The notes beneath the pieces were generated by a model. The model was not told where the DNA came from, ran no database searches, and worked only from the letters and a program-made list of their open reading frames with translations. A stretch of DNA of 64,000 nt from contig OZ038378.1 in the NCBI GenBank assembly GCA_964036045.1, forward strand, positions 13,826,001 through 13,890,000, in the 5' to 3' direction. Below are positions 25,182 to 64,000 of the stretch, piece after piece. Source of the stretch: Eutreptiella sp. 'Long Island Sound 2002'. Its lineage: Eukaryota > Protista > Euglenida. Both the position numbers and the translations under genes were made by a program. The first letter of the stretch is position 1; each line of letters opens with the position of its first letter.

Positions 25182-25337
25182 GTTTCACGAACAAAAGACT
25201 GACTTCGCGCTCTTGGCCGTTCCGGAGCATTGTGCCGATGCGTTGGTCCGCGCGTTGCGCGGAAGCCCCTCGATCAAGGCCGTGTGGCCTCAACGGCAAC
25301 TTCAACTGCCCCCGCGCCCCGAAATGCAGGAGCCCGG
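25182..25337 (+). CDS. MBTPS1: S1P exon 3: prodomain (FHEQKTDFALLAVPEHCADALVRALRGSPSIKAVWPQRQLQLPPRPEMQEP)
   Basis: Aligns to S1P SDFEVIQI...HPNIKRVTPQRKVF; cacag acceptor and gtatgc donor. Confidence 0.85.
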
Positions 25338-39256: not shown

Positions 39257-40373
39257 GCGTGCCCTTATGTCATCCCTTTGCCTCGTCCTTGGCACTGCGC
39301 TCACGCGCTCTGCACCACAGTCTCTTGCACTCTTGCCCCCTATCCAATCCAGAGAACATGATATTTGGAGGCGCACTGCGTATCATCACCAACCTCCGTC
39401 CCAAAAACACCGATTCGCTCAAACAGAACGGCAACACCGTCTCGGACAGAGAGGCAGGGGATCCGGGGCATCGTGGTGCTGGATTACGCGTCCGACACGA
39501 GCAGAGCACCCTGGGACTGGGGTCGTGCCATGCGGTGTCAGGGCGCCGCTGAGGCCGAAGTAGTCCAATGGCTATTGGGGACCAGCACAACCCCCCGTAG
39601 CACACTTCATTTCCACATCATAAACGGTGGCAAGCTCCTCCAAGCCCCGCGCTGATTTGAGTGACTGCAGATGAAATCCGCGTGGCGGGCCTCCAGCAAG
39701 GCATTGTGCTGCGGGGTGCGCCCTGGAACTGACTGCGAGGCGATGGTCCTTCACATTGGACCCCTCCGCATCCCTATGCCCCCCCGGCGATGCGTGGTGG
39801 TCCGGGGGACGCTCCGTGGCACCCTCCATCTGCAGAAAGCAAATGGACCGCTGCGGCTGTACCTCAACGACGGACATCGGCACGCAATGCCACACTGGCT
39901 GTCCTCTGGCGTACGGAATCCCCCGGCGGGAGGTCATGGGCGGGCGGCGGATGACGTAGCATAGCCCCCACACGCCGTCCCTCCATCGCACTTTGCTGCG
40001 AGGGAACTCGGGTCAAGGCTTTTCCTGCCCCTTCGGCCTTCGGGCTTCCCCCGGTATATCTGCGACACGGAGTGTGGGAGGCCACAGGGTCTCGGACGTA
40101 GAGACAAACAAGTGGACGTAAACAACACCGGGTATTGCACAGTGACCGGGGGTGAGGCTCCTGTAGGAGGCAGCCACGGGGTATGTTCAACGGGACGGAG
40201 GGACATCGTCCGTTTCGGGAGCCATGGGCCCTCAGTGCGGGGGCAGCAGATTTGCCAGGGGGTGCACCGGCGCGGGTGGTCGCAGTGAGAGTTTGCTTTG
40301 CAGCAATGCCTGCCTCCTCTCATTAGGCTTTGCGCATCCCCCGCTTCATCGTCCATGTCCGCCCCAATCTCAG

Positions 40374-40504
40374 ATGCGAAGACGTGTGAGGATGGGTTTG
40401 GGCATGGGACGTTTGTGGCCGGCGTGATTGCATCGGCGGAGGACTGTTTGGGCATTGTCCCGGACGCGGAGCTGTATATTTATAAAGTGTTCACTGACAA
40501 GCAG
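40374..40504 (+). CDS. MBTPS1: S1P exon 7 with catalytic His ([44 protein letters not shown])
   Basis: [12 protein letters not shown] motif, ctcag/gtcctc boundaries. Confidence 0.95.
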
Positions 40505-41549
40505 GTCCTCCCCACGCCCCCCTGGCGACGGTCCTGCATACACCTACACTTGACTCAAGCCCCATACATCAGCGCGCGACCGGACTTCCTCATGCAAGCC
40601 ACGCTCTGCTGATGCTGCCTCGTCACTTGCTGTCCTCGTGGCCCTTCCCAGGCCTCGTGGAGACTGGGATCCCCATAGAAGCATCATGAAGGAGGGTACG
40701 CGGAGCGTGAGCTGTAGTGGGGGGGGGAAAGGAGCAAGTCGTCTATAATCCCTACATTATATGCCCCTCCCGGGGGAGAACAGGAGGGCAGATCGGGGCG
40801 CCTTAGCTGGCCCCTGTGATCTAACATACCAGAGCCCCCTAACCCTCCCCTCGCAAGAGCGGCCAGGACATTAAAAGTCCCCAACCCTACATTATATGCC
40901 CGTGCATGTGCGCGCACACACATGCACGCACACACACACACACACGTGCGCGCGCGCGACATGCGTCAGTGCCACATTTCACCTGCCCCCCACTCCGCGG
41001 CTGACCGTCACACGGGGGGTCCAGTGCCGAAACACAGTGCAGATGTATGACCGCCCTCCTGACCCGGCCTTGCTGGTCCACTGGCTTGCCACTCGCGTTC
41101 ACATTTCACTTGCCCCCCCTCCCCCGGTCTCTGCCTCCCCACACTGCAGCCCCCCACGCTCACAACGCGGAACTCCTGCCGCCCCACACTAATGTGCCAC
41201 AGCACACCTGTGATATCTAGAAGCCGCTGATAAGAAACACACAAGCCCAGAGAATAGGCCATCCGCTGTCAACAACGAGCGCATGCAGCAATGATGACCA
41301 AGTACAACTGGCATCGTCCCAGAGCTCCCATTCGCTGAGGTCCAGCATACCACGGAACTTGCTCAGTCAGTAAACTCACCTAGACTGATTGCCTCCATAC
41401 TACCGTGCGCAATGCTCCCTGCAGCCCCCGGCTCCGGGAGCCTCGAATCGTTTCCTACTGAGACCAATCCCCCCTCTTTCTGTCAGGGTGCCCCCGGCAA
41501 AAACTAGGAGCTTGCTGAGCAACGGTCCGTTCCTATCCCCCCACTTTGC

Positions 41550-42866: not shown

Positions 42867-43145
42867 GCATATGCATCATATGTACTGCAGTGCCGACACC
42901 CACACTCAACAAACTTCAACACCCCTCAGCTGCCCTCAACAACGCTGACCAAAGCTTATGCACACTCCACAACCTTCAACACCCCCTCTGCACCCACAAG
43001 TAATCCTTCAAAACCTCAATCAACCCTTGTCAGCCTTCAGCAGCCCCTGGTCTCCACCAGCATCACCGGTTCCTCGACCTCTTTCTAAATCATGTGTCCC
43101 ATTGCGGCGGCCTCCAATGGTCCAAGCACGTTCCTGTGGATGCAG

Positions 43146-43262
43146 GTGTCTTATACCTCCTGGTTCTTGGACGCCTTCAATCATGCCATCTTGGACGAGG
43201 TTGATGTGCTGAACCTCTCCATTGGGGGCCCTGATTTCCTGGACAAGCCTTTCGTCAACAAG
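43146..43262 (+). CDS. MBTPS1: S1P exon 8 ([39 protein letters not shown])
   Basis: Near-identical to the S1P signature segment; tgcag/gtattg. Confidence 0.95.
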
Positions 43263-44779
43263 GTATTGGACTGCCACGTGTCAACTGAGGAGGTGGGTGT
43301 CGTACCGCCTCTCCGGAGGCCGGTTTGCCTGTCCCGGAGCCCAGCCGTGGAGTGTGTGCGTTCCTGGACCCTACACACCCTGGCCAGCCTTGTGTCCCAT
43401 CAGGCACTCGGGCCATGCATCCCCGCACTGAGGACCCTGATATGGACCTTGATGCCTCCTTCACCGCAGTAGATGGGCGGGACTGCCGACACGCGTGGCA
43501 CATCGATGTGGTAGTTCGGGGCATGAGTCCTGTGCCTGAGGGCCATCCGCAAAAAAGAATGGGACACGACCTTCGGTCAGGTTGGCTTTCAGGTGGTTAT
43601 TGGGGACCTTCAGCTTTAGTCCTGCCACCGATTGAGCAGTCGTGTGTACCGGGTCACGTCCATTAGTTTTGTAACACAAGTGAGGGCGGCGTGCACTGCT
43701 TCCATCGATGCTCAAGTTGTGAGGTCCGAGTGGTCTGCTGCGAACCATTTCTTCACGTCTGGACGCCGCAGCTGAGCCTTTCTCCCCAGCCCCGCCATCA
43801 AGAGTTTTGCTGCCCTTAATCAGCCGGGCCTCTTCCACTGCACGGGTCTGTTGGGTGTACAGAGCCATCGTGTCAAAAGAGTGCGCATCTTTTCTCTCCC
43901 AGCCTTTACTCCCTGATATTACACAATGCAAGATATTGCCCTGCACCTACACCGCCTGCGGCATGCCAAAGGCTTTCTGCATCTGGAGCAAGGCCACCGC
44001 ACAACAAATTGTCCCCAGCAGGGGGTCCATCATGTGCCACACAACTGCAAAGGGATGGTGTCAATCACAAGACGGACGGGCCCACAACCGTCTCTGTTCC
44101 TCGTCCTGGATCACGCTCCATCAGAATTGGGTGATGAGTGACCAACAACGTCCACAATGTTGCAGCAGTCCACTAGTCCACTGGCGTCCACTCCACTCCT
44201 GCTCTCACATGCTGCCTGTGTCCAGAAAGGGACACAATATGCACACACAAATGCGTAGAAGATGTAATATTGGTGCACCGGTGTAGGTTTTCCAGTGGCC
44301 AGTGCCCACAAAATGTACAGTACAATGTCCAACAATGTCCCAGAAAAAAGTCTCGGTAATGCCCCAAATGGCCCTCATAATGCCCCAAGACTTCGGATTT
44401 TGACGTGTCTACTAATGTCCCAAATGGCCTAGTCAACACAAGGTTGGTGGGGAGAAAACTAGGCGCAAAACGCCGAGAACAACATTTTTTCCATAAAAAA
44501 AAAGCAGAGAGAAGGCCGAGGGCTTGTTGGCCGCTCTTTTGCACCCCCTTTTCAAAGTTCACATCCGCCCCTTTTTTTAACAATGTTTCTGCTGTTGCTT
44601 GTGCCAATAGCAAAAAAGTTCAAACGACAAGGGGTGCACAAGTCGACACCATCCGGGGTTTGATGAATGTCATGTGCACAGAGCTTTTGCACACCAAGCG
44701 CCACGTCATTCTAAGGGGGTGGGAATCTTTGGGTGTTGAGGTAGGGAGCAACCCCATCAAGGGCAACTGGATGAAGTTT

Positions 44780-45542: not shown

Positions 45543-46693
45543 CAGTAGGCAGTTTGTTATTTATCAAGACTTACAACTAGGATTGAGGATTGACTTACGA
45601 CTAGGATTGGGCTGGGTCCTAGTCTTGCTCAACACATAGGAAAATGCCTCGGAAAGAAGACGGCCTGCAGCAGAGATGCTACTGCATGATCACCACGAAC
45701 ATCTTGAAAAATAGTTCAAAAACAGCTCATTTTTACGTCAAAATGGACCACCGCGTGGCACGATGGTGTGGAAGACGCCTTATTGAACACCCATTCTTTT
45801 GATGGCCCAATCGCCATAGAAGAAGAACGGCCCTCATTGGAGATGCCTACCTCACGCACCGTCGATCGTCCGGAACTTTCAGGAAGATCATCCTAAAAAC
45901 AGCCCCAAAACGGCCATTTTTGGACAGTAAATTGGACATAAATTAGGCTAGATGGCTTGAAATGGCACAAAACTTGTCGCAAGTGATGGGCATTTGTTCT
46001 ATGGTTGTTTTGAGCTACTTGGATGCCAGTTTTGAGCCACAGTGCCCCCAAAAAGAGTTTTCTTGCGTCTGCTTGTTGCTTGCTGCTTGCTGCTTGCTTG
46101 CTGCTGTTGCTAGATGTGTTGCTCACCCTAGGACCCTAAGAGGGGTTGTAAAACCTCGACACGGTAAACCCAGCTTTATTACTCGCTGTGCCACCGGCGA
46201 TGGGACATTCGGGTGGTCGGCCACGGTGTCACTTCATTTGACGAAAAAAATAGCTTTTGATCATCTTGAATTGTGCAGGGTTTCAAGTAGGGTTGGGATG
46301 CAATCATGGAACACATGTGGGGCCAGCAAGAAATGTTTGAATGATTGAACACATATGGGGCGAGGAACCAATGTTTGACCAATTGGAAGCCCATGGGTGA
46401 AGCCATGAAGGGCCAGGAACCAATGGTCAAACACATGTAGTACCTGTGGGCTTTTTTGGGAAACTGTGTAACGGAACACTTTTTTTTTCCTTTGTCTGCG
46501 TTAAGGACTTCCCTGGCCAGCCCTTTCACTATAATGCGTTCCACCAACACCCACATAAATCAGTCCATCGCCTCTAAGAAGCTGTTGGTGGGCGCCTTTG
46601 TTGGGCGAAGGAGCTCCTCTGGATGCGACCCTCTGACCGTTCCTGTGACAGCCCTTCTTCCTTCTTCTCCCCTCTCCAACGCTGTGCATGCAG

Positions 46694-46799
46694 GTGTGGG
46701 AGGCGTCTGCCTCGGGCGTCGTGATTGTGTCCGCTATTGGCAACGATGGCCCGCTCTACGGGACGCTGAACAATCCTGCGGACATGATGGATGTCATCG
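46694..46799 (+). CDS. MBTPS1: S1P exon 9 with oxyanion Asn ([35 protein letters not shown])
   Basis: [18 protein letters not shown]; tgcag/gtgtgt. Confidence 0.95.
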
Positions 46800-47254
46800 G
46801 TGTGTGACCCCGGGGTCCATCAGCGAGTGAGGCTTCTGCGCTGCCCTCTATGGAGCAGGGGAGTGCGTACATGAGTGGGGAGAGGTCGCAGGCCAAACAT
46901 AGGGTTGTGACCCGAAGCTTGGCCTCGACTGTGTGGCCCCTTTCGTCCGTTGCATTGACCCATCTAGACAAAGGTCAACACAACAGCGCGCACAAAATTG
47001 CCTGACATCTGCAGCCCCCCACTGATGGGTACCACTTGGTGATGCGGAAGCCCCGGAGCGCCCTGGCGCTGCTGCAGTGCCCAGTCATCAGTGGTTGAGG
47101 GCACCCTCCGATTTTCAAGGTCATTGAATGGCCGTCTGTAAAGCCGTTCTTGCGCCAGCAGAGGAGTGGATGCCGCAGGCCCATGGGCTGCATCACTAGC
47201 CACGGCCACATTCATCTGAGACCCACAAAAGTGCACCCCTCCTCGCCCACCGCC

Positions 47255-47900: not shown

Positions 47901-49530
47901 CCATGGGACGTGCGTGGGGTCCTCAGTCCAGACCAGGAAACGCCCCTCATGGATAAGCAACCACAACGCAGACAGTGAACAAACCTGCAAACCATGACGT
48001 AGGGTTGTCGGTGCATGTGAATCATGAGGGTGTGGCTTGCCCCCTGCGATCTCTGAGGCCACTGACATGGGCAGTCGAGAGGTGTGGGATTAGCAGGGCA
48101 CAGATGATAAGGATGCGCGCGCTCAGCTTCCACAATCTTTCGTGTCTGCCAACCACATATTCCCTTGCTCTGACCTTGCGGGTGGCAGTCTGGCACAAAA
48201 ACGTGTTACATTCACTTATCATAGCATCGTGCTCATGCATCCCAATACCATACATGGCCTGTCGCAGACAGGGACCGAGGTGATGAAATCATACCTAAAT
48301 GAGGACGTGTGTGCATCAAATCTTTGAGGGTACTCAGCAGCAGGTATCAGGGAGAAACAGAGAAATGTCTTTCTGCCATGGCAGAGTATGAGGTTGTGTG
48401 TTTGTGGCCTTGAGACTCGTGACGCGTGCCTCAGCTCACTTTTGACAATTTTCAGACACCGGCAAACGCTCTCTATGTTGCTTCCTGCATACCGGTGTGC
48501 GCCTCTCGTTGGTGTATTTTTTACGCTCCCATTTCACTGCTGAACACTACCGAGAGCAGTGATACCTCCACCGTGAATTTGAGGGCAACCGCAACCAAGA
48601 CGTCGCAGCAGAGCACCGGGGAGGTTCTGTCGAAAGAATTTATAAGGCAGGCCGGAAGTGTTTTGTCCCACCCAACAGTACGAGGTACAGCCCCCTGGTA
48701 TGACCCAATCAACCAGGAAAACAAAAGCGAAGGTAGCATAGGCCTCAGAAACAGGAAGCACACAGCAGTCGGAGTTGGACCGTGAGAGTGCAGCCCAGCG
48801 ACGGTGGACGGCAGATGCGCATACCATAGCACCACTGCCCTGGGGTTGGGTGGGCCAACGGCAACCTTGCGTCCGGTCCCTGGGGTGCCGATGAACAGGG
48901 GGGCAGGACCCACTCAGACGTGACCCTGTGGGCCGACCTGATGGAGTACGCATGGCGCGGGTCTGTTCAGGGCCTGTACGACATGCGTTTGGGACGCTTT
49001 GTCGTGAAGGGGCATAGGGTGTTTTCAAAAGGAGCCGTCACACATGACAGTGGGACTGGACTGACTGCCAGTCGCTGCTGTGGTCATGTGTATTGAGCTT
49101 TCCAGACCTGTGCCTCGGGGTGGCACGCTCACAAGCGGACCCGCAGGCGCTCGTCGGGAGACCCGCCATCTGGCATTGAGGCACCGAGCTGGATTTCAAT
49201 GGCACACGAGGGGCTCTGCCCTCAGGCATTCAACTCATGCCGCAGAAGGGCAATGGAATATGCGGCATTTCAGGGGCCCTTTTTTACCATTTCGTAACGG
49301 GCAAGAGTATCTGCGGTTGTCCATAAGACTGTGGCACAGTGCCTGTCCCTTCAATACAACGCATATGGACGCACACTGAGGCAACCCGCATGCTGTAGCC
49401 CCGTTGTTCCAGAGGGTTGCACGGCGATATTCCAGCGCTCAGCCACCCCCCCCCCCCCGCTGCCCCCCATCCCACTTCGTCCCTCATCTCCCCCCCCCTC
49501 TCTCTCTCCCTCTCCCTCTCCCTCTCTCAG

Positions 49531-49672
49531 GGGTGGGAGCCATGACGCAGGCTCAACAAATCGCACGTTTCTCATCGCGGGGCATGACCACTTGGGAGTT
49601 ACCTTGGGGCTACGGCCGCTTCAAGCCGGACTTCGTGACCTTTGGTGAGGCTGTGAGGGGCAGTAGCCACAG
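49531..49672 (+). CDS. MBTPS1: S1P exon 10 ([47 protein letters not shown])
   Basis: [21 protein letters not shown]; ctcag/gtgtcc. Confidence 0.95.
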
Positions 49673-50746
49673 GTGTCCGTTGTCGGAGGTGTTACGAGGA
49701 GGACTGTGACAACCCCCGACTCAGAACAGCGCGAGGGAGAGGGAGAGGGAGAGGGAGAGGGAGAGAAAGAGGGAGGAAAAGGCAGAGGTATTTATTGTGA
49801 AATTGAAGACAAGACTATGAGAATGGGGGCCAGAGAAGCACTGCGGTCATTAAACTCGATCAATCAATCAATCTTTTGAAATGCTGAAACACAATGATAA
49901 AGGATTAAGCTTCGCAGGTAGCTTGATGTCTTCCAAAACCGAGAGATTTCTAAAAACATGTGCCCATTTATCGTTTGGCGGTGCCCTACCCGGTAGAAAA
50001 AAAGATTTGTACCAAGAGACGTCGACGGCTTTATTTGATTTTAGGCACAGGTCCATGGTCGAAAATGAGTTTAGCGACCGTGGTGAGGGAGGTAAGGTTG
50101 CACGCGAGAGCGCGCGTGCAAGCAGGAAAGACACGGGCTGCACGTGAGCGTGGGGTCCGTGGCTGGGGCGGTAGGTCAACCACCATTTGGGTGGTGCGCT
50201 GCTTGGGCGAGCGCGCCTGCGTACTGACTGAGTGCTGCCTGCGTCGCTGCATGCGTGGGTGCGTGCGTGTGTCAGTGCCTGCCTGCGTGCAGTCCCTGAC
50301 CGAGGGCGGGACTGTGCGAGCACGTGCGCCTTTGCATCTGCTGGTGCGCAGATGAGTGACTGAGTGAGCGAGGGAGCGTTTTTGTGTGTGAACAAGAGAA
50401 AGGGAATCAGGGCAAGAAAGAACGGGCGGTGAGAAATCCCTGGTCCTTGTGTTTCCTGACCTCAAGGTCCATCCCTTGAAAGAGGTGAGGTGAGTCCCCG
50501 CCCTCCCGGCTTTTCCCGGCTTACAGGAGCCTGTCAATTCCGCCAACCACCCCATCCAGCCCTCAACTGCCATTCAATCCTTCTTTAACTGCCAGGGTTT
50601 GCCTTAACCGTCTTTCCAACTGCCAGAAACCGCTTTTATACTTGCTGCTAAGATCTTTTTTCGGCCCCTGTCCCCTGCAAGCACACGCCTGGTCATCCTT
50701 TACAGCGGCTCTGAAACCGGATACGTTCACCAATGTGCGTTCTCAG

Positions 50747-50946
50747 GGGAGGATGCAAGAGTCTCTCGGGGACCAGCGTGGCCTCTCCGGTGGCGGCGGG
50801 TGCAACTGCTCTGCTCGTGGCGTTGGCCAAGCAGCACTCCAGGGCCCACAATCCCGCGGCCCTCAAGCAAGTCCTCACTGCCTCGGCGAAGCCCCTGCAT
50901 CGCGTGGGCGTGTTCGAGCAGGGAGCCGGTGTTATGAATTTGGAAG
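50747..50946 (+). CDS. MBTPS1: S1P exon 11 with catalytic Ser (GGCKSLSGTSVASPVAAG...FEQGAGVMNLE)
   Basis: SGTSVASP, NPAALKQ, EQGAG; ctcag/gtgtgt. Confidence 0.95.
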
Positions 50947-52223
50947 GTGTGTCGGCTACCAACCATCGATCCCCACGCCCGAAGCCCGTCCGTGCACACG
51001 TATGACATGCAGCGGGCATCAAGGGCACCAAGACGGCATACGAAAGGCAGGCAAAGGGCCTGCCAAGGGCACACAGGAGGTACACGAAGGGCATGCAAAT
51101 GGCATAAACACGGCATGAGCAGTGGGTTCCCGTCGCTCCACGTGAGGTATGGTCGTTGGGAACCGCACTCGCCACCCCGTCCAGGCGTTTGGAGGGCGGC
51201 ATGGGTCCGGGTTGCGGCACATTTGCACTTAGGAACAGAACCATTGGGCTCTGAAAGGGGTGGCACACATCACACGGCAGAGAGAATTCGTGGGATGGGA
51301 GCGGGGTTGGCGTCTGAAGGGCTGTGCTGGACTCAAACGACCCTGTGCAGCCTCTTATTTTGCCGCTCTGAAGGACCAGCTGCCGTGCGCTGTGGGGTGT
51401 GGATCTGGACGCCGGTGGCGCAGGAGTGTCCCACCTCTCTATGGGGGCTGCTTTGCACGTGCAGTGCGAACATTCTGGATGCTGCAACACCCTGGCCTCG
51501 CATGCAGCATCGTGTTGCAGCATGTGATGCCCTATAGTAATGCACACTATTCCCAGCTGAGCCCCCGTGTTGTCTTGTGTGTGTTGGATCATCGCGGTTT
51601 GCATTGGGGTCCACAACAGGCACCCGGTGGCCATGAAGGTAAGGTATGACACCACTGATCATGCTCTCCCTTTGGGCTGATGACGGGTGTTCAGGCTTGT
51701 TGAAGGCCTTGCAAAGGGTCATTGTGGTTTGTTCGCGATTGTTGCAAAGGCCAATGGGCAGACAGGGGCAGGGGAGGCTGTGCACACAGGTGTACCACTA
51801 CGCCCTTGGTGGATCAATACGGTCTGTCACACACCTGGCTTCCTCTGCTCATCGTGCTCTCGCCAGGCGACTGTGGCCGGGTGAGCCTCTGTACTGCCCC
51901 ATGCGAGTTCCGATCCCTACTGAACCCCAGTTTTCTGCTCATAAACCAACAATGCAGGTGCATGGCCATGGCCATATGCCCTGATGCTGTCGGGGTGCAC
52001 TCACTGCACCCCCGTGCCTGCGGTCACAGAACCACCCAGAGACTCACCGCTTCCAGCAACCCAATGCGATACACTGCACCCGATACACCTCCAAGACCTC
52101 CCAGTTGCAGCCAGAGTCCGCAGCCCAAGTCAAAGGGGGTCCCTTCCTGCAGCATCGCTTCCAACACGAGGTTGCATGGCAGGGCAGGGCAGGGCAGCGT
52201 AGCTGCGAACCATTTTCTGTCAG

Positions 52224-52350
52224 AGGCTGCGAAGCTCATGGTGGAGTATGTGCCACAAGTCACTTTCTTGCCGCGGAGTCTGAATCTCGTGGACGAAGGC
52301 ATGTGGCCATTCTCTACGCAGCCCCTGTACTGCAGTGCGCAGCCACTCAA
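52224..52350 (+). CDS. MBTPS1: S1P exon 12 (EAAKLMVEYVPQVTFLPRSLNLVDEGMWPFSTQPLYCSAQPL)
   Basis: Matches S1P YKPQASLSP...YMWPYCSQPIY; gtcag/gtattg. Confidence 0.9.
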
Positions 52351-53599
52351 GTATTGCCTCGCCCCCTGCTCCGCGCGCCTGTGAGGCCCTAAGCCGGGCG
52401 TCGATCATGCCGAGGGTGGGGATGCAACTGCTGTGGGTCGCCGCCTGGGAGGCCGATGGTGCCACAGAATCTGCACACCCAGAGCCCGTGCCGGGATGTT
52501 CGACAATTTCGCCCGCTCGACGGAGGAGGTTGTTATTGTGGCGAAGATTGATGGTCCTTCAGAACGCGCCAATGCGCACTGCTGTATGCGTGTGTGCACC
52601 GCCGTTGTGTGCCAGTCAAGTGCACTCCCGACTGCGCCTCGCAAGCCCCTGGACCTCTTCTTTGAACTAGGCAGAGAGGCAGCAGGAGTTTGCGCCATCA
52701 AGCCCCCACTGTCTGGGCCACATGCACGTCTCCGCTACTGTTGGTGTTCCTCAGGCAACGTGGGGATGGTGGGGCGGAAAAGAAGCGCACGCATGGCTGC
52801 CACTCCTTTCCTGGGGGTAGGCCAAGTGCTGTACCTCCTGCCAAAAATGTGGGTGCTTGCCCTGTTCATTTGATTTTATTTGACCCCCTCCTCCCCTCTG
52901 TGACAAAGCAAAGCCCTGGTGCAGTCCCCCATTGCCTGTGTGGTCCCCTGCTGCCGGTATGCAACTCTTGAGCCTGTGTGCAGTCACCTGCTGTATTAGG
53001 GGCTTAAATGTTTTGTGAAACACAGGAACGTGTGCAAGACAGCTTGTGCTTGTTTCTCCCAATCACTTTGCTCATGTCTGGTTAGCTGCAAGACCATGAA
53101 ACACACGAACATCTGAAAGTGCATTTGTAAGTATCAAATGGCTCTTGTGCATGTGCGGTGAATTGGAAGTGTCTAGTGTAGGCCTCGTGCGACCGGCAGT
53201 TACCGCACGGATAAGTTATAGATAATTGGCCAAATCGCAGGTTCCAACCTCCAATATTTGTAGGTTCCAATCTCTAACATGTATGTTTGGCCAATACAAG
53301 GAAGCATGCTACACCACCCATATCTCCCAAGTGTTCTTATTCATGTGCTATGTGTGCATAGTGTTACTCATTACTACTTTTTATTGTTATTTCGCATATG
53401 CTACATTGTACTCTCTAGTATCATGATCATTGTACATTTCATTCTTGCTGTTCCCTTTTGTCCATGTTGGAGGGATATACCTCCAGCTTAGCTATCTAGA
53501 GCGTAGTATTTAGTCCATTTCAAGTCTACAAATTCTCTGCATTTCGCAACTGTGCCCATGCACCAACCGGTGGGACTGGTCCCACTCCAAAACCAAAGT

Positions 53600-54400: not shown

Positions 54401-55488
54401 TCAAACAGACAATGATGATGCAAATGGTGCCCTAAAACGATGTTGTGCCCGAATGTGCCATAAAGCCCAAGTGGCAGTCCAAGATGACAAGGAGCAAACA
54501 TCTTGAGAGAGCAAATGTGTTGACATCTTGACCATGACTTCTATCAATCCAAGATCTTTTTCTTTGTCTTTCCTTTTTTCCACAGAATATTCATACAATG
54601 TCTCATTTGTGTTGCCTCTAAATATGTTGGGTGTTGTTGTGGTTGTGTGTATGTGTGTGCTGCAACCCACTACAGTCCCGCTTGCCTACTTGTCCCCAAA
54701 ACTAGTTATGCTTGTCCCCGTTTGTCCCAGAAAAAGATGATGCTTGTCTCCACACCAAGGCTAGTTGCAAAATGAGATGGTTTCGCAAACCCTTCTGTTG
54801 AAATAATATCGTTGCAATGGTTTTGTTTGTGATCCAGATAACAAACACCATAGCAATGCTGTTTTGGTTGTGTGTTTGACAAGTTCAGCTTGGTTGCTGC
54901 TCTCCACCAGCGAAAATGATGCATCACCTGCGATTGACATCACGTCATGTCATTCAAAGGCTACTGCATTCCGTTGTTGTCTGTAGGTAGTACCGTACTG
55001 TCGGTATGCGGTTCCTTGCTGCATGTGTGTAGTTCCCTGACGTCCATTCGTGCCATCGTCTCTGCACCATTTCTTTGTGTCATTTCTTTGCTCCACCCTG
55101 CCCCCTTCTTCCCTATTCTTTCCCACCTTTTGGTGAGTGACATCCCAAGGAAATTGGTCCTTGGCACGCAAACGCACCCATCAACAAATACTGGACAATG
55201 TAACACCAGCACCAACGATTTTGATTATCATTTCCTCATTTTACTTGTACCACACGGAAAATGTGGTACAATGTGCGCAAAAAGGCAATTCTTACAAGAA
55301 TTGACCTTTTTTTTGGAAATCGGGGGGTGGCGACATGCAACTACCCTGGGAAACTATTTTAGGGGCCGGGCCCTGCCCTTCCCTGCCCTGCCTGGCTTTG
55401 TCCTCTCCTCTGCGGCTGTGCCCTGCCCTCTTCTGCCATCCAAGTTCCTTGACACACGGAAAAAGTGTGTGCACTGTCTTGTAAACAG

Positions 55489-55673
55489 GTTTAACGTCAC
55501 CCTTCTCAACGGTTTGGGAGTCAAGGGGCGGGTGGTCGGTGTTCCGCAATGGGTCTCGACGCGGGGCCCGGATATTCTTGACGTCCGAGTGGACTACTCA
55601 GATCAATTGTGGCCCTGGTCCGGATACATGGCAATTGACTTGACCGTGAAGACCCAGGGCTGCAAACATGACG
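55489..55673 (+). CDS. MBTPS1: S1P exon 13 (FNVTLLNGLGVKGRVVGVPQW...QLWPWSGYMAIDLTVKTQGCKHD)
   Basis: NVTILNGMGV and LWPWSGYLA equivalents; aacag/gtgtgc. Confidence 0.95.
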
Positions 55674-56177
55674 GTGTGCCTCCGCCCATACCAATAGAAT
55701 GTTGGATCGAGAATGCAAAACGTGGCACGTGACGTGCGAGATGTTGGCTGTGTGGCGTGAGGTTTGAGCTATGGAATGTGGGATGTGGGGTGTGGGATGT
55801 GGGGTGTGGGGTGTGGGAGTTCTGGGACGTAGGAGATTGAAGGTGTCTGGGGCACGATAATGGGACCCAGCGTTGGAACCGGTGGTTGTCCCCAGTAACA
55901 CCGAGAGGGGTTGCATGGAACGCCAGAAGAGCCTCATATCCTAAGCCCCACGGTCTGAAAGTCCATGTACGCGCTACTCCACAGAGCAGCCCGTCATTGC
56001 CCACAGGGAGAAGCCAGCGAGCAAACCATGCCAAGAAGGCAGGCAAATGTTCGGTTGGTGGCATGTGCAGGGACGCAAACGTTTCTGGCGGCGCCAAGAA
56101 GAAGAAACCCTCATTTCTCTTTATTCTTACTGCGTTCTTGTATTAGAGGAGCCCAATAGCGCTCAGAATCACCGGAA

Positions 56178-56580: not shown

Positions 56581-56653
56581 GGATCGTTGAGGGTGAATTG
56601 ATGGTAACAGTGGAATCGCACGTGCAGCGGCTCACTTCTGATCTGCAAAAAGA
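56581..56653 (+). CDS. MBTPS1: S1P exon 14 (GIVEGELMVTVESHVQRLTSDLQK)
   Basis: Matches S1P EGIAQGHVMITVAS; ttcag acceptor, gtaggt donor (phase 2); 3' end less certain. Confidence 0.75.
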
Positions 56654-57691
56654 CGTAGGTATTTCGCTGCACTCGCTCAGTGCACCGGCTGCGGTACGCG
56701 CTGATACGGGCTCCTCTTGAATTGAGATTTCCGGTACTCGGGCATGCGAAGGGCCTGCAAAGGCCTTGCAAGTCGTGCAAAGAGCATGCAAGGGGCATAC
56801 AGAGTTCCAATCACATACATAAGCACAGCGTTGATGACGCTGCAAGTAGAAGCGCTCATGCAACCGGCGGCTCCAGCAGTGCCCACGATATTTCGGGATT
56901 ACCTACCTTACCTGTGTCGATATTAGCTGCATCCACATTACGTGCACAATGGCCTTTCTCCCCACAAGGTTGATTCACAGCAGAGAACATCCCATTCCAA
57001 CATGTGCAATTGCATTCATGGATCAAGGGCTGCACCCGTATCGACCCGTATGGACAGGGTGCACCCATTTTGTGCTGGACCCGGCTCTGATCCGACCTGT
57101 AATCGTGAATGCTCACTGTGGGATGCGGGTGTTCTGGGGCAGAAGGTTAGTTTTAGGTGATACACATGCACACAGCATGGCACCGTAGACAGGCAGAAGC
57201 TAAATCTCGCACAGGAAGCAGCCGACTGTGTACCAGCACCAGGGATCTACCCGGCAGCAGTCGTCAACGCGCACTGTAAATCGGAATCGGGGTGCCGGGT
57301 GACCCTACCCAACCTCTCGGGGGAGACAGTAGTTTTGGGGGCTTGGTACCGGGGCAGGGACATGGCGACAGGATTGTTCCCCACTGGGCCACCCTACCCA
57401 GCCGCAATGTTGGGCTGACGCTTAAAGGGCTTGTTGCTGAGGCATGGGCATGAAAGGAGTTATGCATGATGGCCAGAGGGGCATTGCTATGCACACAGAC
57501 AGCAGGCAACTACACACAGTCAGCGGGGCTCTGTCAGCAGCGGGCTCCATCCTCGCATGTGAAGCAAGCTTTTTGCATAACCCATCGACACGACTCATGA
57601 AAACAGGTTTTGGCGGACCAGCGGTCATTGTATTTGCGCGCGCGCGCGCGTGCGTGTGTGTGTGTGTGCAACACCAAGTTCGATTCTACAG

Positions 57692-57711
57692 ATGGGTCAC
57701 AGCTTCCACAG
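57692..57711 (+). CDS. MBTPS1: Candidate 20-nt S1P micro-exon (T-WVTAST-G)
   Basis: tacag/gttccg boundaries supply the phase 2 to 1 bridge needed between 56653 and 58305; no homology support. Confidence 0.3.
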
Positions 57712-58304
57712 GTTCCGGATTCCGATCCCCCGTGCCTATTACCCACAAAGTCACCATACCCCATCTACACCTCCAGCCCCTGGGAGCCCTCCTCCGGCAT
57801 GTTGCCTGCTTTGGTCGAGCCGGACAGCCATTCAGTCGTGTTGGTCGGACAGCCATTCAGTCGTGTTGGTTGCTCTTGCAACATTGCCTCTGTAGCGGGG
57901 CCCTGTGGCGTGGTCAGAGAGGAGAGGTGGGGGTAAATGGAAGTGGAGAAGCGGGGGCGTGAGGGAAGAAAGGGGGGGATGGGTTGGGTGCCACAGGGTT
58001 GACCAGGGGAGGAGGGGGGGGGGGGCGGCGTTCCATAACGGCCGGTTGGGCGCCATGTAGTACACCCGGTGTGCAGTGCCATGTGTGTTTTGTGGGACCC
58101 GCTGTTGGTGATCGGGGTCGTTTGTGGGAGGGATGGGGGTTTGTTGCCGACACTGCTCACGCCACCGACCTGGCGAGCCCTGCCAGGGCCTTCACGCTTT
58201 ACATTTACGCCAGGGGTCGGGGGGTGGCAGCCACGCAGCGGGGGTTTTTCATTTGGCCAGCGCTGTTCTGTGTCGTGCTGCGTGCCCATGGTCTGCCATC
58301 TCAG

Positions 58305-58446
58305 GAGTCCCTGATGCCGAGGACGGCGTTGAATACGAAGGCCATGACATCGGCCAAGGGGACGCAGCGAATATAGACGAGTGTCATAAGATGTGCCGCC
58401 GGATGCCGCACAGTACTCACTGGACGTTTTCGAAGTATTACGCGCG
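58305..58446 (+). CDS. PAN/Apple-like domain exon A, probably part of S1P (GVPDAEDGVEYEGHDIGQGDAANIDECHKMCRRMPHSTHWTFSKYYAR)
   Basis: GVxYxGxDI...ECxxxC...WTF pattern of PAN_4/Apple domains; ctcag/gtgtgt, phase 1 to 2. Confidence 0.8.
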
Positions 58447-58794
58447 GTGTGTTCCGAGGGATGGCGTGGGACAGGGCAGGGGCTTGTGTGTAAGTCATGC
58501 ACTGTTTTTACTGCACAGCTGAGCAAATCCACCGGGGGTCAGCCCATTGTACTGGGCTGTCACGCACGTCCCCAAAGGGGCAGGTCAGCTGTGCAGAACC
58601 CGCAGGACTGCGAGAGGGTTGCGGAGAGAGCGTGGTCCTGGTGTGCGGGGACAGAGGAGGGGCAGCCCTGCCGGTCGGCGTGGGGGGGGGTCTAGTAATG
58701 AGGGGACGAGGGGGTGTTGTCCGTCTGTGGCACCCATGGGCCTGGGCATTGCGGTCTCGACTTTGCGGGCCGTCAGCACGTCTCGTATCTTCAG

Positions 58795-58868
58795 ATGCTA
58801 CTGCAAAAGTGCTGCATCTAAGCGCACCGCCGTTGAGGGCTACACCTCCGGGCCCGTAGTGCTTTCAG
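58795..58868 (+). CDS. PAN/Apple-like domain exon B (CYCKSAASKRTAVEGYTSGPVVLS)
   Basis: CxxK...GxxSGP C-terminus of Apple domains; ttcag/gtctgt; phase 2 to 1 joins exon A to the S1P exon at 61000 in frame. Confidence 0.8.
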
Positions 58869-60999
58869 GTCTGTTCGTGCGGGCGCGCGCCCATCACCTG
58901 CACCGCAAGGCACCGGCCCCCCCTCATCGCCGATGACTGTACGCCGCGTGCACCGCACAGCACGCCCTCGCCGCCCCCCCCCTACCGCCGACGTCGTACT
59001 TCCACTCCACTCCATTTGGATGAGGGGGCGGGGGGGGGCAGACGCCGGATGAGAGAGTCCCTCCCAAAACTCACAAATGGTGGTCATGCGCACGCCGGGG
59101 GCCACTCAGAGGCGGTGAGCCCACGGGCGTGCGTCTGCGATCAGACGTGCGAGGGACACAGTGGTCCGCGCGCTGAACGTACTTCAGGTGCCCGGAGCCC
59201 CAGGGCCCAGAGCCCCGGTGACTACCCCGAAGCCTCCGAAGGGGGGCGGGTACCCAAGACGGCGGAGGAAAGCGAAAACAGTGGCACGAGCGATGGGATC
59301 GCCTTGAGCCACACGCCGTTACGGGGCTTGTCCCCTCTGCAATCCTCTCGGGCCTGCACTCAGCCGCGCGGTGATACCAAACGGCAGCTCGGCCCACGCC
59401 ACGGAAACGGGTCAACAAGAGGCGGGCGGCCGCACAGCAGCCCCGTGAGGCCCCGGCAGGACCGTCACGGACTGTGCGTACGCCGAATCAAATCGTTGTG
59501 TACCGAGTGCTCATCGGAGGGGGGCTACTGCTGAGACACGTTGAATCTTTGTCGATGCCAGCTTGATAGTCGTAGGACACTAGGTGCAGAGAATGCTTGT
59601 ACTCCACGTACTTTGTTCACTGCAGCGAAAGGCGCCTATGACATGTCACTGAAGAGCTTTCCTCTTTGACTTTTGCTTTGCACTTCTGCTTTGTGCTGAA
59701 CAGCGCCGGTCGTGCACACGCATCTGTATCCCATAGCGGGGTACCCAGGCCATCTGCGCTGTCAATGTCTTGATCGCCGCCTCAAAACAAGTGGTCCACA
59801 ACGCACTTGACTCGTCCAAGTCGATGGACGTCCCTCCGCCGGGAGACGAGACGCACGGTTGTACGGAGGATCTTGAGGCCATACCCCTCCCTTGCCCCCC
59901 CCCCCCCAGCGCCCGCCCCCCTCCGCTGGCAGGCTACCCCCCCCCCGCGCCATGAGCGTTTTCCTGCCCACGTGGGCCCATGGGGGCACTCTCGTGGCTG
60001 AGCCTGTGAGCCTGCAGGACCACGGCCGCCGCTGCCTCGAGTACACCTCCGGCGGGGGTGTGCGCATTGAGGGATGCACTGCAGCCCATTGGGCCCTGTG
60101 CTGGACTGCGAAATCTGGTCATGTTCAGGAATCTTTGGAATCCCTCGATGACCGTTGTGCGTTGTGCTGTGGCATGCCCCGCACGTCATCCAGTCTTCCT
60201 TCGCCTGGCCCACCGCGTAGCAAACGTGCCACAGAGCCCCCCCCCCCCCCCACCAAAAAAACATCTGCGATGCGTCGTGTGAGATATTTGCAACTTCTTG
60301 GAGCGTACCGCACGTGTATTTCAGTGGTAGCGGCGATGCATCCTCGGGTCAGAGTGCGGGAGTGCCGGGCAGCATCGTCATGTGCAGTCTGCCGTCGCGT
60401 TTCCTGGAGCTGAGGTTTTACAGTGGGAAGTGGGGGCATCGGCTGGGACGGGAGGGGCGGCGTGCAGTTCCTGTTAGCAGTCATAAAGACACGGGTGGCT
60501 GTGCTGTCCAGTACTGCCAGGCACTGACAAACATATGCGCAGTCACACCCCAGCCCTCCCCTTGCGCAAGCACGGCGTTGTGTGACCGCCGCCTTTGCGG
60601 TGAATGTCACATGAAACATGACGCCGATGTGAGTCCAGCGACTCCGAAAGAGGGGCCGGGTCACGCATGTGACGCATGTGTCACGCATGCTCATGACACT
60701 CTACCTTGGAGGGCACCCATTTTCCGCACCGCGGATTGGGACCGGCGACAGGTCTATATTAAGGCTGGGCTTTGTTGACAGAGGCTTGTCGTACATATGA
60801 ATGGCCTCGTCGAAGCCCCGTCTGACCATTGGGTTCCCAGATTTCGGCCGAGAAGGGGAGGAGATGCGCATGCTCTTAATTTTGCAGGGGTGACCTAAAC
60901 CCAGGGGTGGCCTGTCCCTCTTTGGGTGTCGCTGACCGCGCCCTGCGGGGCCCTGGTTACCTCCACTGCACCTCTATGCCCTTCCCCGCTTTGCCTCAG

Positions 61000-61110
61000 G
61001 TGTAGTGACGGGCACTGCCACACTCCCCATCCGAGTGCATGTCGTGCCACCTCCGGCCCGGCGTTTGAGAATTTTGTGGGATCAGTTCCACAGCATTCAG
61101 TATCCACCAG
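61000..61110 (+). CDS. MBTPS1: S1P exon (GVVTGTATLPIRVHVVPPPARRLRILWDQFHSIQYPP)
   Basis: Matches S1P [32 protein letters not shown]; ctcag/gtgcct. Confidence 0.95.
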
Positions 61111-61135
61111 GTGCCTCCGTTGCGGCACCGCTGCC

Positions 61136-62135
61136 CAGGGGAGGGGCGACATGCTAATTCTCGACAGAGGGTATAGTTTGGCCAAACTACCCCGTTTTTT
61201 CGAAGGGGCTGAAAAATTTGGTTAACACCCGTTTCGCACATTTGAGTTTTGTTGATTTCTCCCTGCTTGCCACCGGTCCCCGGGTCCCAATTTCTGCACC
61301 CCGCAGCCCCTGCTGTCACACCAGCAATTTTTAATTTTTAGTCTGATGCTTGCCAGAGGTCTCAGAGTCCCAATTTCTGCACCCTGCAGCTCCTGCTGTC
61401 ATACCCGGGATTTTTAATTTTTAGTCTGATGCTTGCCAAAGGTCCCAGGGTCCCAATTTCCGCACCCCGTACCAGCAACCCGCAGTACCGCAACCGCAAG
61501 CAGCACACCAGCTGCAAAGCGGAAAAACTTGTCGGCCCCAAGTGTTGCGGCCAAGCAGCGCAAGACACAAGGCAGTGAAGGCGTACAGTCCCTGCATGTT
61601 GAATGTTACATGTGGGGCAAAAGTATCGCCACCGGCGGCCCCCCTAAAAATTTCCGCCGGTGTGCCAAAAATGGTGAGGCCGACCTACCGCAAAAAAAAA
61701 TCTGTCCCCAAAGTACTTTGTTGCATGACTCAAGCCCTGTTGCATGGCGGGAATACCCCAGCTCGGGTCACAAGGCGGAGCAGTCCCGGCACGTGCCCAG
61801 ATTAGCCGTGGAGTGACGCCACAAGAGAACTTTGTGAGCAACAGCCACACATCAGACTAAAAATTAAAAATTCCTGGTACGACAGCAGGGGCTGCAGGGT
61901 GCAGAAATTGTGGCCCTGGGACCTGTGCCAAGCATCAGTCTAAACATTATAAATTCCAGTGAGGGTCACGCGGTGCTTTTTTGTCTTGGTTTTTGTTCAA
62001 TACAAAAACTGTCCCTTTTTTCAGCGGGCAGGTTTGAAATGTGCAAAAACCCCCCAAACTACCCCTTTTTTTGAGGGGGCTGAAAAATTTGGTTACCACC
62101 CCCATGTGCAAAACTTGCATGTCGCCCCCCCCCTG
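61136..62135. mobile_element. 1000-bp non-autonomous hAT element with 19-bp TIRs and perfect 8-bp TSD
   Basis: TIR CAGGGGAGGGGCGACATGC versus CAGGGGGGGGGCGACATGC (18/19); TSD CCGCTGCC at 61128-61135 and 62136-62143; internal ~75-bp repeats present in inverted orientation. Confidence 0.92.
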
Positions 62136-63463
62136 CCGCTGCCTCTGGCATAATGGCTCCTCTTGGGGCTCGACCATTTTGTGTCTACGTGGGAGGCAGT
62201 GGGCATCGGCAGTGGTAGTGTGTCTGGCGTGGGAGTTGTGGCCATGAGAGTTGTGGTAATGAAAATGTGGGGTGCGTGAGGGGGCAGGGAGGTCCTCGAA
62301 GGACCCGACAACCAGGGGCATTGAGATGAAGCAGCGAGGGTTCTGGGAGCAACTAAGAAGACGTCCAAAGGTTCCGTGCCGGGCGTGGCCTGTGGCAAAA
62401 CGATGGAGCCCATCGGGGACGCCACAATGTAGATCATGGGACATTGGCTGGGGCTGGAACTGGGCATCACCTCAGCACCTACTGCCACCCCTTCAGTCAT
62501 GCACCAAGGGTAGCACTATGGCGATGTGCTGTGCCGTGCTTTAGACTACGCAGTGCACCGGAAGCGACCAACAGACTCATGCGCCAGGGCACACGGAGGC
62601 CGGCTTCCGGCATGTGGGTGAGAGTGGTTGGTTCTCATCCAGGAGGTCGCAGCGGCCGCCATCTCTTGGTGTCTCTTTTACACCCCATTTTGCTGCTGAA
62701 CACTCGTTCTTTTCATCCTCTTTGCCATGGGCCGGTCGCAGGACCTGTTTGCCCCAACAGGGCATGTGTGTTGGGAAGGTGGATGGCATCACAGCAAAGA
62801 TTTGCCCACCCATGAATCACATGCACACCACAGGAGTGCACAACACCGGAGGTATGTAGTTGATGGTCAACTTAAAGAGTCGCATCTACGGGGTTGCCTA
62901 GAGACGACCTGTGGCGATACCTCCGGGGCGAAAGTGAAAGCAGTGCGAGGCAAGCGAGCAAGGCTTGTCTTTGATGGGGTACCTGCAGCCTCCTTTCAAA
63001 AGAGAAGGCTGCCCTCCAGCTGCCGCTGTGAGGGCAACAGCACGGAAATCGAAGAATGGGACGCCTATGGCCCCACCGGTGTAAGGAGGGAGAGCAAGTC
63101 AGAGAAGAGAGCGGCCGTGAGGGCATCAGGCAGGCGCTACTTGGTTGTGCAGACCCCACCGCAACACCGAAGGACTGCAACGCAAATGACATGCCATTAC
63201 CAGAACGAAGTGGGGACGTGGCTTTATTCTTGGTTGGGTGTGTCCGTAGTATCGGGGGCAGAAGGAGGACAGTAATGCAGGGGTGGTGGAACTGAAGGGG
63301 GGAGGGGCCCTAATGCAAGCCCAGTGGAGGCCTAAATCCAAGGCCAAGCCCCACAGCACCAGACATGGCACCAGCCCCAGCCCCAGTGCCAGACCTGGGG
63401 CCGGGCCAGTGGGATTGCCGTCAGCTGGGCTTTGGCTCCGATTGCCTGCTTGGCATTTGTCAG

Positions 63464-63571
63464 GGTACATTCCTCGTGACGACCTGGATGACACGAGGGA
63501 TTTACTGGATTGGAACGGCGACCACCCACACACCAACTTCAGGGAAATGTATGGATTCCTGCGCCGACACG
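63464..63571 (+). CDS. MBTPS1: S1P exon ([36 protein letters not shown])
   Basis: GYxPRD...LDWNGDHxHTNF; gtcag/gtatgc; gene continues past 64000. Confidence 0.95.
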
Positions 63572-64000
63572 GTATGCCTTCTCTATGGCATCGGTGAGCT
63601 TGTTGTGGTGGCTCAGTGGAGCTGGTGTAAACGGCGGCTGTACCATACAGACCGGTTGAGTGTTGTGCGATACAAGCGGCGGTCCAGTGCCATGTCTTAC
63701 GTGTGACCTGCTTTTGTTGATCGACGTGGTTGTGAGGACAGTGTGCGGGGAAGGGGGGGGGGGTCGTATTGTGGGTGAGAGTGAGATGTTTGTCCCACAC
63801 CCCAGCCCACAGCAGTTTCGTCTCGGCTGGGGTATGGGGGCATGTCACGTATGGGAGCCCGGATGGGGGTGGGCTGGGGGGCTCCGGCCTTGAGCCGTGA
63901 GACAAATTTGGAAAGGGGTTCGTTGCCAGGCGCGTAGGGCTGGTGCTGTGAAGTCCGGTGTCCGAAAGTGTTTTCGAGGCCCAAACGATTTACAATCGGT

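Follow-up and report, generated by a model that had tools for sequence, protein, structure and literature searches.

Two exons in the middle of a euglenid site-1 protease (S1P/MBTPS1) gene encode, to judge from their sequence, a PAN/Apple-type module of approximately 65 residues. They lie in a 64,000-nucleotide window of the genome of Eutreptiella sp. 'Long Island Sound 2002', which contains most of the S1P gene. Aligned with other S1Ps, the insert and its linkers take the place of a short surface loop, which precedes the final β-strand of the P-like subdomain and lies immediately before the GIFT subdomain. A counterpart at the same place in a Euglena longa mRNA indicates that the module truly belongs to the protein and was inherited. 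Our reading as a whole is that the PAN module has been carried in this S1P loop since before the split from E. longa and may serve as a binding exosite in the lumen; we would give this reading a probability of roughly 0.7. We regard the architecture itself as very likely right.

S1P is deeply conserved and acts as a gatekeeper in regulated intramembrane proteolysis (of SREBP, ATF6, bZIP17/28 and others). The first S1P structures date only from 2024, and to our knowledge the architecture of the ectodomain has been thought uniform. If our account is true, the S1P ectodomain would have its first described domain insertion, and a subtilase would have been joined to a PAN domain a second time, independently. 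In the literature that we searched, no paper pairs S1P/MBTPS1 with a PAN or apple domain, nor Euglena with S1P. By sequence comparison, the combination is genuine and restricted to one lineage, and as far as that literature shows it is undescribed.

The site-1 protease gene and its two PAN exons

The S1P gene lies on the + strand of the window, is made of many small exons spread over more than 38 kb, and continues past the 3′ end of the window. The genome measures 2.28 Gb in 2317 contigs. In tblastn with the E. longa S1P, the upstream matches within the window were at 25195-25305, from 38479, from 39166, at 40370-40507 and at 43131-43283; those in the middle were at 46682-46804, 49530-49673, 50745-50957 and 52217-52360; and the last were at 55487-55673, 58301-58429, 60984-61112 and 63463-63573. 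These 13 exons are colinear with the E. longa protein, as are two short ones placed by local alignment. The catalytic Asp, His, Asn and Ser motifs of an S8 peptidase are all present in window exons (VAVFDTGI, GHGTFVAG, SAIGNDGP and SGTSVASP, respectively). Pfam searches of single exons identified Peptidase_S8 on exon 50733-51002, MBTPS1_3rd (PF23094) on 55532-55729 and MBTPS1_4th (PF23090) on 61005-61154 and 63283-63594, so the window gene has the order S8, then P-like (MBTPS1_3rd), then GIFT or GATase-like (MBTPS1_4th).

Ahead of the insert, exon 55489..55673 (+; AG 55487-8, GT 55674-5, phase-1 end) encodes the middle of the P-like, or third Ig-like MBTPS1, subdomain (LWPWSGYMAIDLTVKT). It matches MBTPS1_3rd at E 2.5e-11 over profile positions 47-94 and E. 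longa S1P residues 399-462 at 58% identity by tblastn. The next exon, 56581..56658 (+; AG 56579-80, GT 56659-60, phase 1 at both ends; IVEGELMVTVESHVQRLTSDLQKDV), carries the penultimate P-like strand (IVEGELMVTVES) and a linker into the PAN module. Its best local match is E. longa S1P 463-480 (z 6.3), and its linker differs from the E. longa linker by approximately 3 residues in length, as counted from the sequences. The initial annotation had placed the donor of this exon at 56653, which is five bases off: the exon ends at 56658, and the donor is GTATTT at 56659.

Across the intron upstream of the PAN cassette (56659..58304, +; GT…AG, phase 1), the split codon g|ga gives a Gly before VPDAEDGVEY. 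PAN exon 1 (58305..58446, +; AG 58303-4, GT 58447-8, phase-2 end) has full codons at 58307-58444 for 46 residues (VPDAEDGVEYEGHDIGQGDAANIDECHKMCRRMPHSTHWTFSKYYA), which comprise the N-terminal strand, the helix with C-x3-C and the strand STHWTF. The intron that splits the PAN domain (58447..58794, +; GT…AG) is in phase 2, and read-through of it meets a stop at 58520-58522 (ORF 58124-58522). When it is removed, the split codon cg|a gives Arg. PAN exon 2 (58795..58868, +; AG 58793-4, GT 58869-70, phase-1 end; full codons 58796-58867) reads CYCKSAASKRTAVEGYTSGPVVLS and supplies a C-Y-C-K strand, where C-x-L-K is usual, and the tail GYTSGPVVLS. The GT/AG borders of both exons and the peptide that they encode, including the split Arg codon, are exactly those originally proposed.

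Downstream of the cassette, the intron 58869..60999 (+; GT…AG) is again in phase 1. The junction codon g|gt gives Gly, after which the frame is kept into VVTGTATLPIRV / VVTGTATLPIRVHVVP; the phase-1 end of exon 2 fits the S1P exon at 61000, as had been claimed. That exon (61000..61110, +; AG 60998-9, phase-1 end) encodes the last P-like strand (TATLPIRVHVVP) and, in RILWDQFHSIQYPP, the beginning of the fourth subdomain (GIFT or GATase-like). It matches MBTPS1_4th at profile positions 1-20 and E. longa S1P 550-592 at 58% identity by tblastn. The four introns after 55673, 56658, 58868 and 61110 are all in phase 1 and are consecutive but for the phase-2 intron within the PAN domain. The frame would therefore survive in several products of exon skipping. 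The introns adjoining the PAN exons also contain homopolymers, of nine G at 58682-58690, nine C at 58974-58982 and nine G at 59030-59038.

In the cryo-EM structure of mature human S1P, residues 187-478 form the S8 peptidase, 479-616 the P-like β-sandwich and 617-998 the GIFT subdomain (PMC11231238). These limits place the insert in the P-like subdomain, ahead of its last strand. The E. longa protein aligns with human S1P (E 7e-233) in two blocks, residues 63-476 with human chain residues 187-598 and 560-828 with 610-882. Between the blocks, human S1P has approximately 11 residues (598 to 610) and E. longa approximately 83.

PAN/Apple character of the insert

The PAN/Apple fold consists of one α-helix packed on an antiparallel β-sheet. 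Its core has a C-x3-C motif in the helix and one cysteine in each of the following two strands, and these form two disulfides. PAN exon 1 alone matched Pfam PAN_4 (PF14295) at E 3.5e-5 (24.2 bits, profile positions 1-38 of 51) and PAN_1 (PF00024) at E 0.024. The PAN_4 score is under the gathering score of 27, as expected because exon 1 amounts to three quarters of a domain; exon 2 alone (24 aa) had no Pfam match. Throughout, the queries were single exons or continuous natural relatives. When a profile of exon 1 and the insert of a paralogue on C14 (described below) was compared by hhalign with nine PAN_4 domains from the same genome, each above the Pfam cut-off, the match had a probability of 97% at E 1.1e-10. 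The window module and those nine domains have in common G-x-D, C-x3-C, the W in the following strand and the last Cys. These comparisons bear out the earlier description of the insert as PAN/Apple-like. The nearest language-model neighbours were PAN-domain clusters for both exon 1 (0.91) and the E. longa insert (0.93), which we treat as leads only.

The window module retains three of the four core PAN cysteines. The third is Ser (PHSTHW), and an extra Cys stands at the Leu position of C-x-L-K; both departures, already pointed out in the initial annotation, are visible in the alignment with the nine PAN_4 domains. All four core cysteines are present in E. longa and in the C14 paralogue. Elsewhere in the window gene, exon 52217-52360 (+) reads LNLVDEGMWPFSTQPLYCSAQPL at a motif that is L(D/N)LTDCPY(M/L)WPYC(S/x)QP in the consensus of the family and in E. 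longa. The two motif cysteines are absent together, and a new Cys stands six residues further on. Considered alongside the Ser that replaces a core Cys in the PAN exon, this loss suggests that the disulfides of the window copy have been rearranged.

Exon 1 is a single-copy sequence. Its best match elsewhere in the genome is a strong PAN_4 domain in a giant open frame on C11, at 41% identity and E 0.005. PAN_4 domains at C11:13552245-13552397 and C14:13724815-13724961 lie in uninterrupted frames of 5511 and 8233 codons, respectively. The genome contains at least 57 PAN_4 matches, and some of them lie in near-identical multi-copy arrays on C3, C5 and C21.

AF2 modeling of the E. longa S1P with 78 homologues gave a pLDDT of 84.6 overall and 35-60 for insert residues 482-555, where a helix (507-514) and two strands (520-526 and 531-536) were predicted at that confidence. 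The C14 insert, modeled from an 11-row alignment, had a core pLDDT of approximately 90 and the order strand-helix-strand-strand-strand; the alignment was seeded with genuine PAN_4 domains, which makes this model partly circular. Nine of its ten best matches among 48,161 PDB chains (VIA-align) were PAN/apple domains, with Z 5.2-6.6. They included SML-2 and TgMIC4 (Z 6.6), the apple domains of factor XI and kallikrein (Z 6.0), plasminogen and HGF. The top Foldseek matches were all PAN/apple structures. The model matches support a PAN fold without proving it, because the Z-scores are modest and the alignment held true PAN_4 domains.

Orthologue, paralogues and history of the insert

The E. longa S1P (EukProt EP00668_Euglena_longa_P016680, 971 aa) is the TransDecoder ORF of transcript GGOE01020970.1 and therefore comes from a spliced mRNA. 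The ORF begins at a position that corresponds to residue ~105 of human S1P and is probably 5′-truncated. Around the insert it reads VEGKLLLVVES…EEGVEYRG…ACRMLCRGHPHCTHWTF…WCYCR…FTSGP…AVLPIVVP. Its Pfam domains follow in the order S8, MBTPS1_3rd (to 477), PAN_1 (491-543), PAN_4 and MBTPS1_4th (from 573), with PAN_1 at 23.9 bits against a cut-off of 21.4 and PAN_4 at E 6.7e-5. The precomputed public Pfam annotation of EP00668_P016680 has only PF00082, PF23094 and PF23090, and so misses the PAN domain at 491-543. The initial annotation held that no S1P with a PAN domain was known. That is true of the searched literature, but EukProt holds this one, unannotated for PAN.

Five consecutive exon pieces of the window gene have their best matches at E. 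longa S1P 414-452, 463-480, 489-525, 532-550 and 559-591, in strict order and with no leftover residues (z 31, 6.3, 16.9, 5.0 and 20, each against 200 shuffles). PAN exon 1 is identical to E. longa at 16 of 37 positions and exon 2 at 8 of 19, with CYC and TSGP in common. Exon 2 on its own is borderline, with an alignment score of 44 against 46 for the best shuffle; its position is colinear. The PAN exons are less conserved than their neighbors, at approximately 42% identity against 57-80% in the flanking exons. Together, the fitting phases and this colinearity confirm the earlier claim that the insert is in frame within S1P, between the TVES and TLPIRV strands.

Protein homologue searches with three queries turned up no transcript or protein of the window's own S1P gene, and for this reason the inclusion of the PAN exons in this genome's mRNA rests on orthology. 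The 132-aa ORF that surrounds exon 1 had no match at all, and the E. longa insert region returned only the query itself. The ORF of a third paralogue, on C9, used to cover fragments of 177-562 aa, returned only genome-called ORFs and unrelated S1Ps.

The paralogue on C14 (about C14:34747671-34749143) carries the insert in one uninterrupted exon of 490 codons (1.47 kb), which runs from the C-terminal half of S8 through MBTPS1_3rd, a Cys-rich PAN-like segment and into MBTPS1_4th with neither stop nor intron; the insert in this copy requires no assumption about splicing. It occupies the same loop as the window insert and matches PAN_4 at E 5.5e-4 (residues 300-324). It is divergent, with five cysteines in the PAN core and seven across the inter-anchor stretch. 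The catalytic Asp, His, Asn and Ser motifs are intact. This gene is intron-poor: the single exon corresponds to at least nine exons, or approximately 17 kb, of the window gene, and there are further large exons upstream (203 aa, S8) and downstream (393 aa, MBTPS1_4th). The C9 paralogue (C9:53121956-53122345 region) has a short loop without a PAN insert, so two of the three S1P paralogues in the genome bear the module.

An exhaustive HMMER search, with the C14 ORF as query and 1.84 billion cluster representatives as targets, found 276 proteins at E ≤ 1e-30. We compared the loop in the best 150 of these 276 plus some cluster members, of which 151 sequences had both flanking anchors; the members with names included a diplonemid, chlorarachniophytes, Paulinella, a choanoflagellate, Thecamonas and Closterium. 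The inter-anchor segment was 20-50 aa long in 142 of the 151. In seven more it was 50-75 aa, mostly of low complexity and with at most one Cys. Among the 151 compared, only the E. longa S1P and the C14 ORF had a segment longer than 75 aa or with more than one Cys; theirs measured approximately 112-115 aa and had 5-7 cysteines. Other S1Ps therefore have only a short loop, as the initial annotation had it.

Since the insert is at the same place in the E. longa mRNA, it predates the split between E. longa and the species sequenced here. Our trees covered 208 shared columns and excluded the insert. E. longa, C14 and C9 formed a euglenid clade (SH-aLRT 94; 86/87 in a 20-row tree) in which C14 and C9 were sisters (86; 99/91). 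The topology (E. longa,(C14,C9)) would imply that the insert was gained once, ahead of the duplications, and that C9 lost it. The alternative in which the two PAN-bearing sequences group together was not rejected by an AU test (p 0.295). In a MAFFT alignment, the short C9 loop (TVRSQVPPRARKAGAADYVEGSATLP) partly aligns with ERAPRC and RAPGAVSGV of the C14 insert, a pattern that might be the remnant of a deletion. We favor an insert that is older than the paralogue duplication and was lost from C9.

Exon shuffling had been proposed as the origin of the cassette. The cassette is indeed of class 1-1, with phase 1 at both 56658|58305 and 58868|61000, but the neighboring introns are also phase 1 and the PAN domain itself is split by a phase-2 intron. 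Moreover, the C14 paralogue is intronless in this region, and no close donor was found, the best other copy in the genome being 41% identical. Shuffling is thus a conjecture about how the cassette arose.

Three other explanations of the two exons deserve weighing. They could be an optional cassette, with S1P made with and without the module, perhaps according to condition. Both flanking introns are in phase 1, so skipping from 56658 to 61000 keeps the frame, and we found no RNA from this genome to show constitutive use. However, the sole orthologous transcript on record, from E. longa, includes the module; the C14 gene cannot skip it, because there the region is one exon; and the splice sites of the PAN exons resemble those of neighboring constitutive exons. 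We consider optional use improbable. The idea that the exons are a separate small gene nested in an S1P intron draws on the fact that euglenid mRNAs can begin by trans-splicing at any acceptor. It is by far the least probable of the three. Both ends of the cassette are in phase with S1P exons, no stop follows exon 2 unless the intron is retained, and the homologous segment in E. longa is within the S1P mRNA. Eight ORFs from both strands of the two flanking introns (56659..58304 and 58869..60999) had no Pfam match, which also argues against a nested gene, and we rejected the idea.

The remaining alternative accepts that the module is spliced in and holds that it is a decaying relic, a long loop that no longer makes a disulfide-bonded PAN fold. 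At one core position E. longa keeps Cys but the window has Ser, with a codon (AGT) that differs from TGT in a single base, and the low identity of the PAN exons, the least conserved of the gene, could mean relaxed constraint. The C9 paralogue, without the insert, implies that S1P can do without the module. Against this, the frame is intact, as are both pairs of splice sites and the majority of the signature positions (G-V-E-Y-x-G-x-D, C-x3-C, H-W-T-F, C-Y-C and T-S-G-P). The window module also has an even number of cysteines, four, because of the extra Cys of C-Y-C; E. longa shares this Cys, and it could restore the disulfide pairing. We judge decay to be a little less probable than optional splicing, and we continue with an inherited PAN module as the preferred reading.

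Possible role and comparison with known systems

S1P in this organism would be a type-I lumenal Golgi/ER protease, in which case the PAN module faces the lumen. By analogy with apple domains, the module could give the enzyme an exosite of its own that binds a protein or glycan in the lumen, and through it substrates or a partner might be recruited or selected. We propose this specific binding role tentatively, as possible rather than probable. An extension of it, that an exosite in the P-like subdomain alters which glycoproteins or partners S1P engages and that the PAN-bearing and PAN-less paralogues split the substrate repertoire, is if anything slightly more doubtful.

SPRING1 is the S1P-activating cofactor known from animals. 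This genome encodes a homologue at C8:25917233-25917580 (+; PF10218, 111.5 bits, E 5e-29), in a single open frame of 218 aa, and an S1P-SPRING pair thus seems to be present in euglenids. We considered and rejected the PAN module as a stand-in for SPRING because this homologue exists. If it binds a partner, the module would act in addition to SPRING and not in its place. In the human complex, SPRING binds a ridge that spans all three S1P subdomains (PMC11231238).

A binding module inserted next to the junction of protease and GIFT subdomains amounts to a natural experiment on substrate choice by S1P and on how much insertion the P-like subdomain tolerates. The same genome supplies built-in controls in the form of a PAN-less paralogue and a PAN-bearing, intron-free one.

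Human, animal and plant S1P (MBTPS1/SKI-1; PDB 8UW8, 8UWC and 9CSD; PMC11231238) have the same order of S8, P-like and GIFT subdomains as the euglenid proteins. They differ at the insert, where the human gap is approximately 11 residues and the insert-bearing euglenid proteins have approximately 80-100, including the PAN/Apple module.

Another known combination is a secreted subtilase of Aphanomyces with a C-terminal PAN/Apple domain; in 2023 the union of subtilase and PAN was called unique to Aphanomyces (PMC10084794). As in the euglenid S1Ps, an S8 subtilase is joined to a PF14295 module, which the authors of that work consider a binding domain (PMC10084794). The Aphanomyces PAN domain is at the C-terminus of a secreted subtilase that is not S1P, whereas here it is inside the P-like subdomain of a membrane-anchored S1P from an unrelated lineage. 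If our account is true, the claim of uniqueness to Aphanomyces is corrected.

Factor XI, plasma prekallikrein, plasminogen and HGF also combine PAN/apple domains with a serine-type (trypsin-like) protease domain, and the C14 model superposes on their PAN/apple domains with Z 5.2-6.0. The apple domains of factor XI and prekallikrein are exosites for substrates or cofactors. These proteins have a chymotrypsin-like fold, N-terminal tandem apple domains and the full six-cysteine pattern, whereas the euglenid module lacks the outer disulfide and sits in a subtilisin-like host. Sarcocystis SML-2 and Toxoplasma MIC4, small PAN modules that bind galactose-type glycans, are the best matches of the C14 model (Z 6.6, rmsd 2.6-3.0 Å over 62-66 residues). 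They are free-standing adhesins and not part of an enzyme, and their identity to the C14 insert is only 12-20%.
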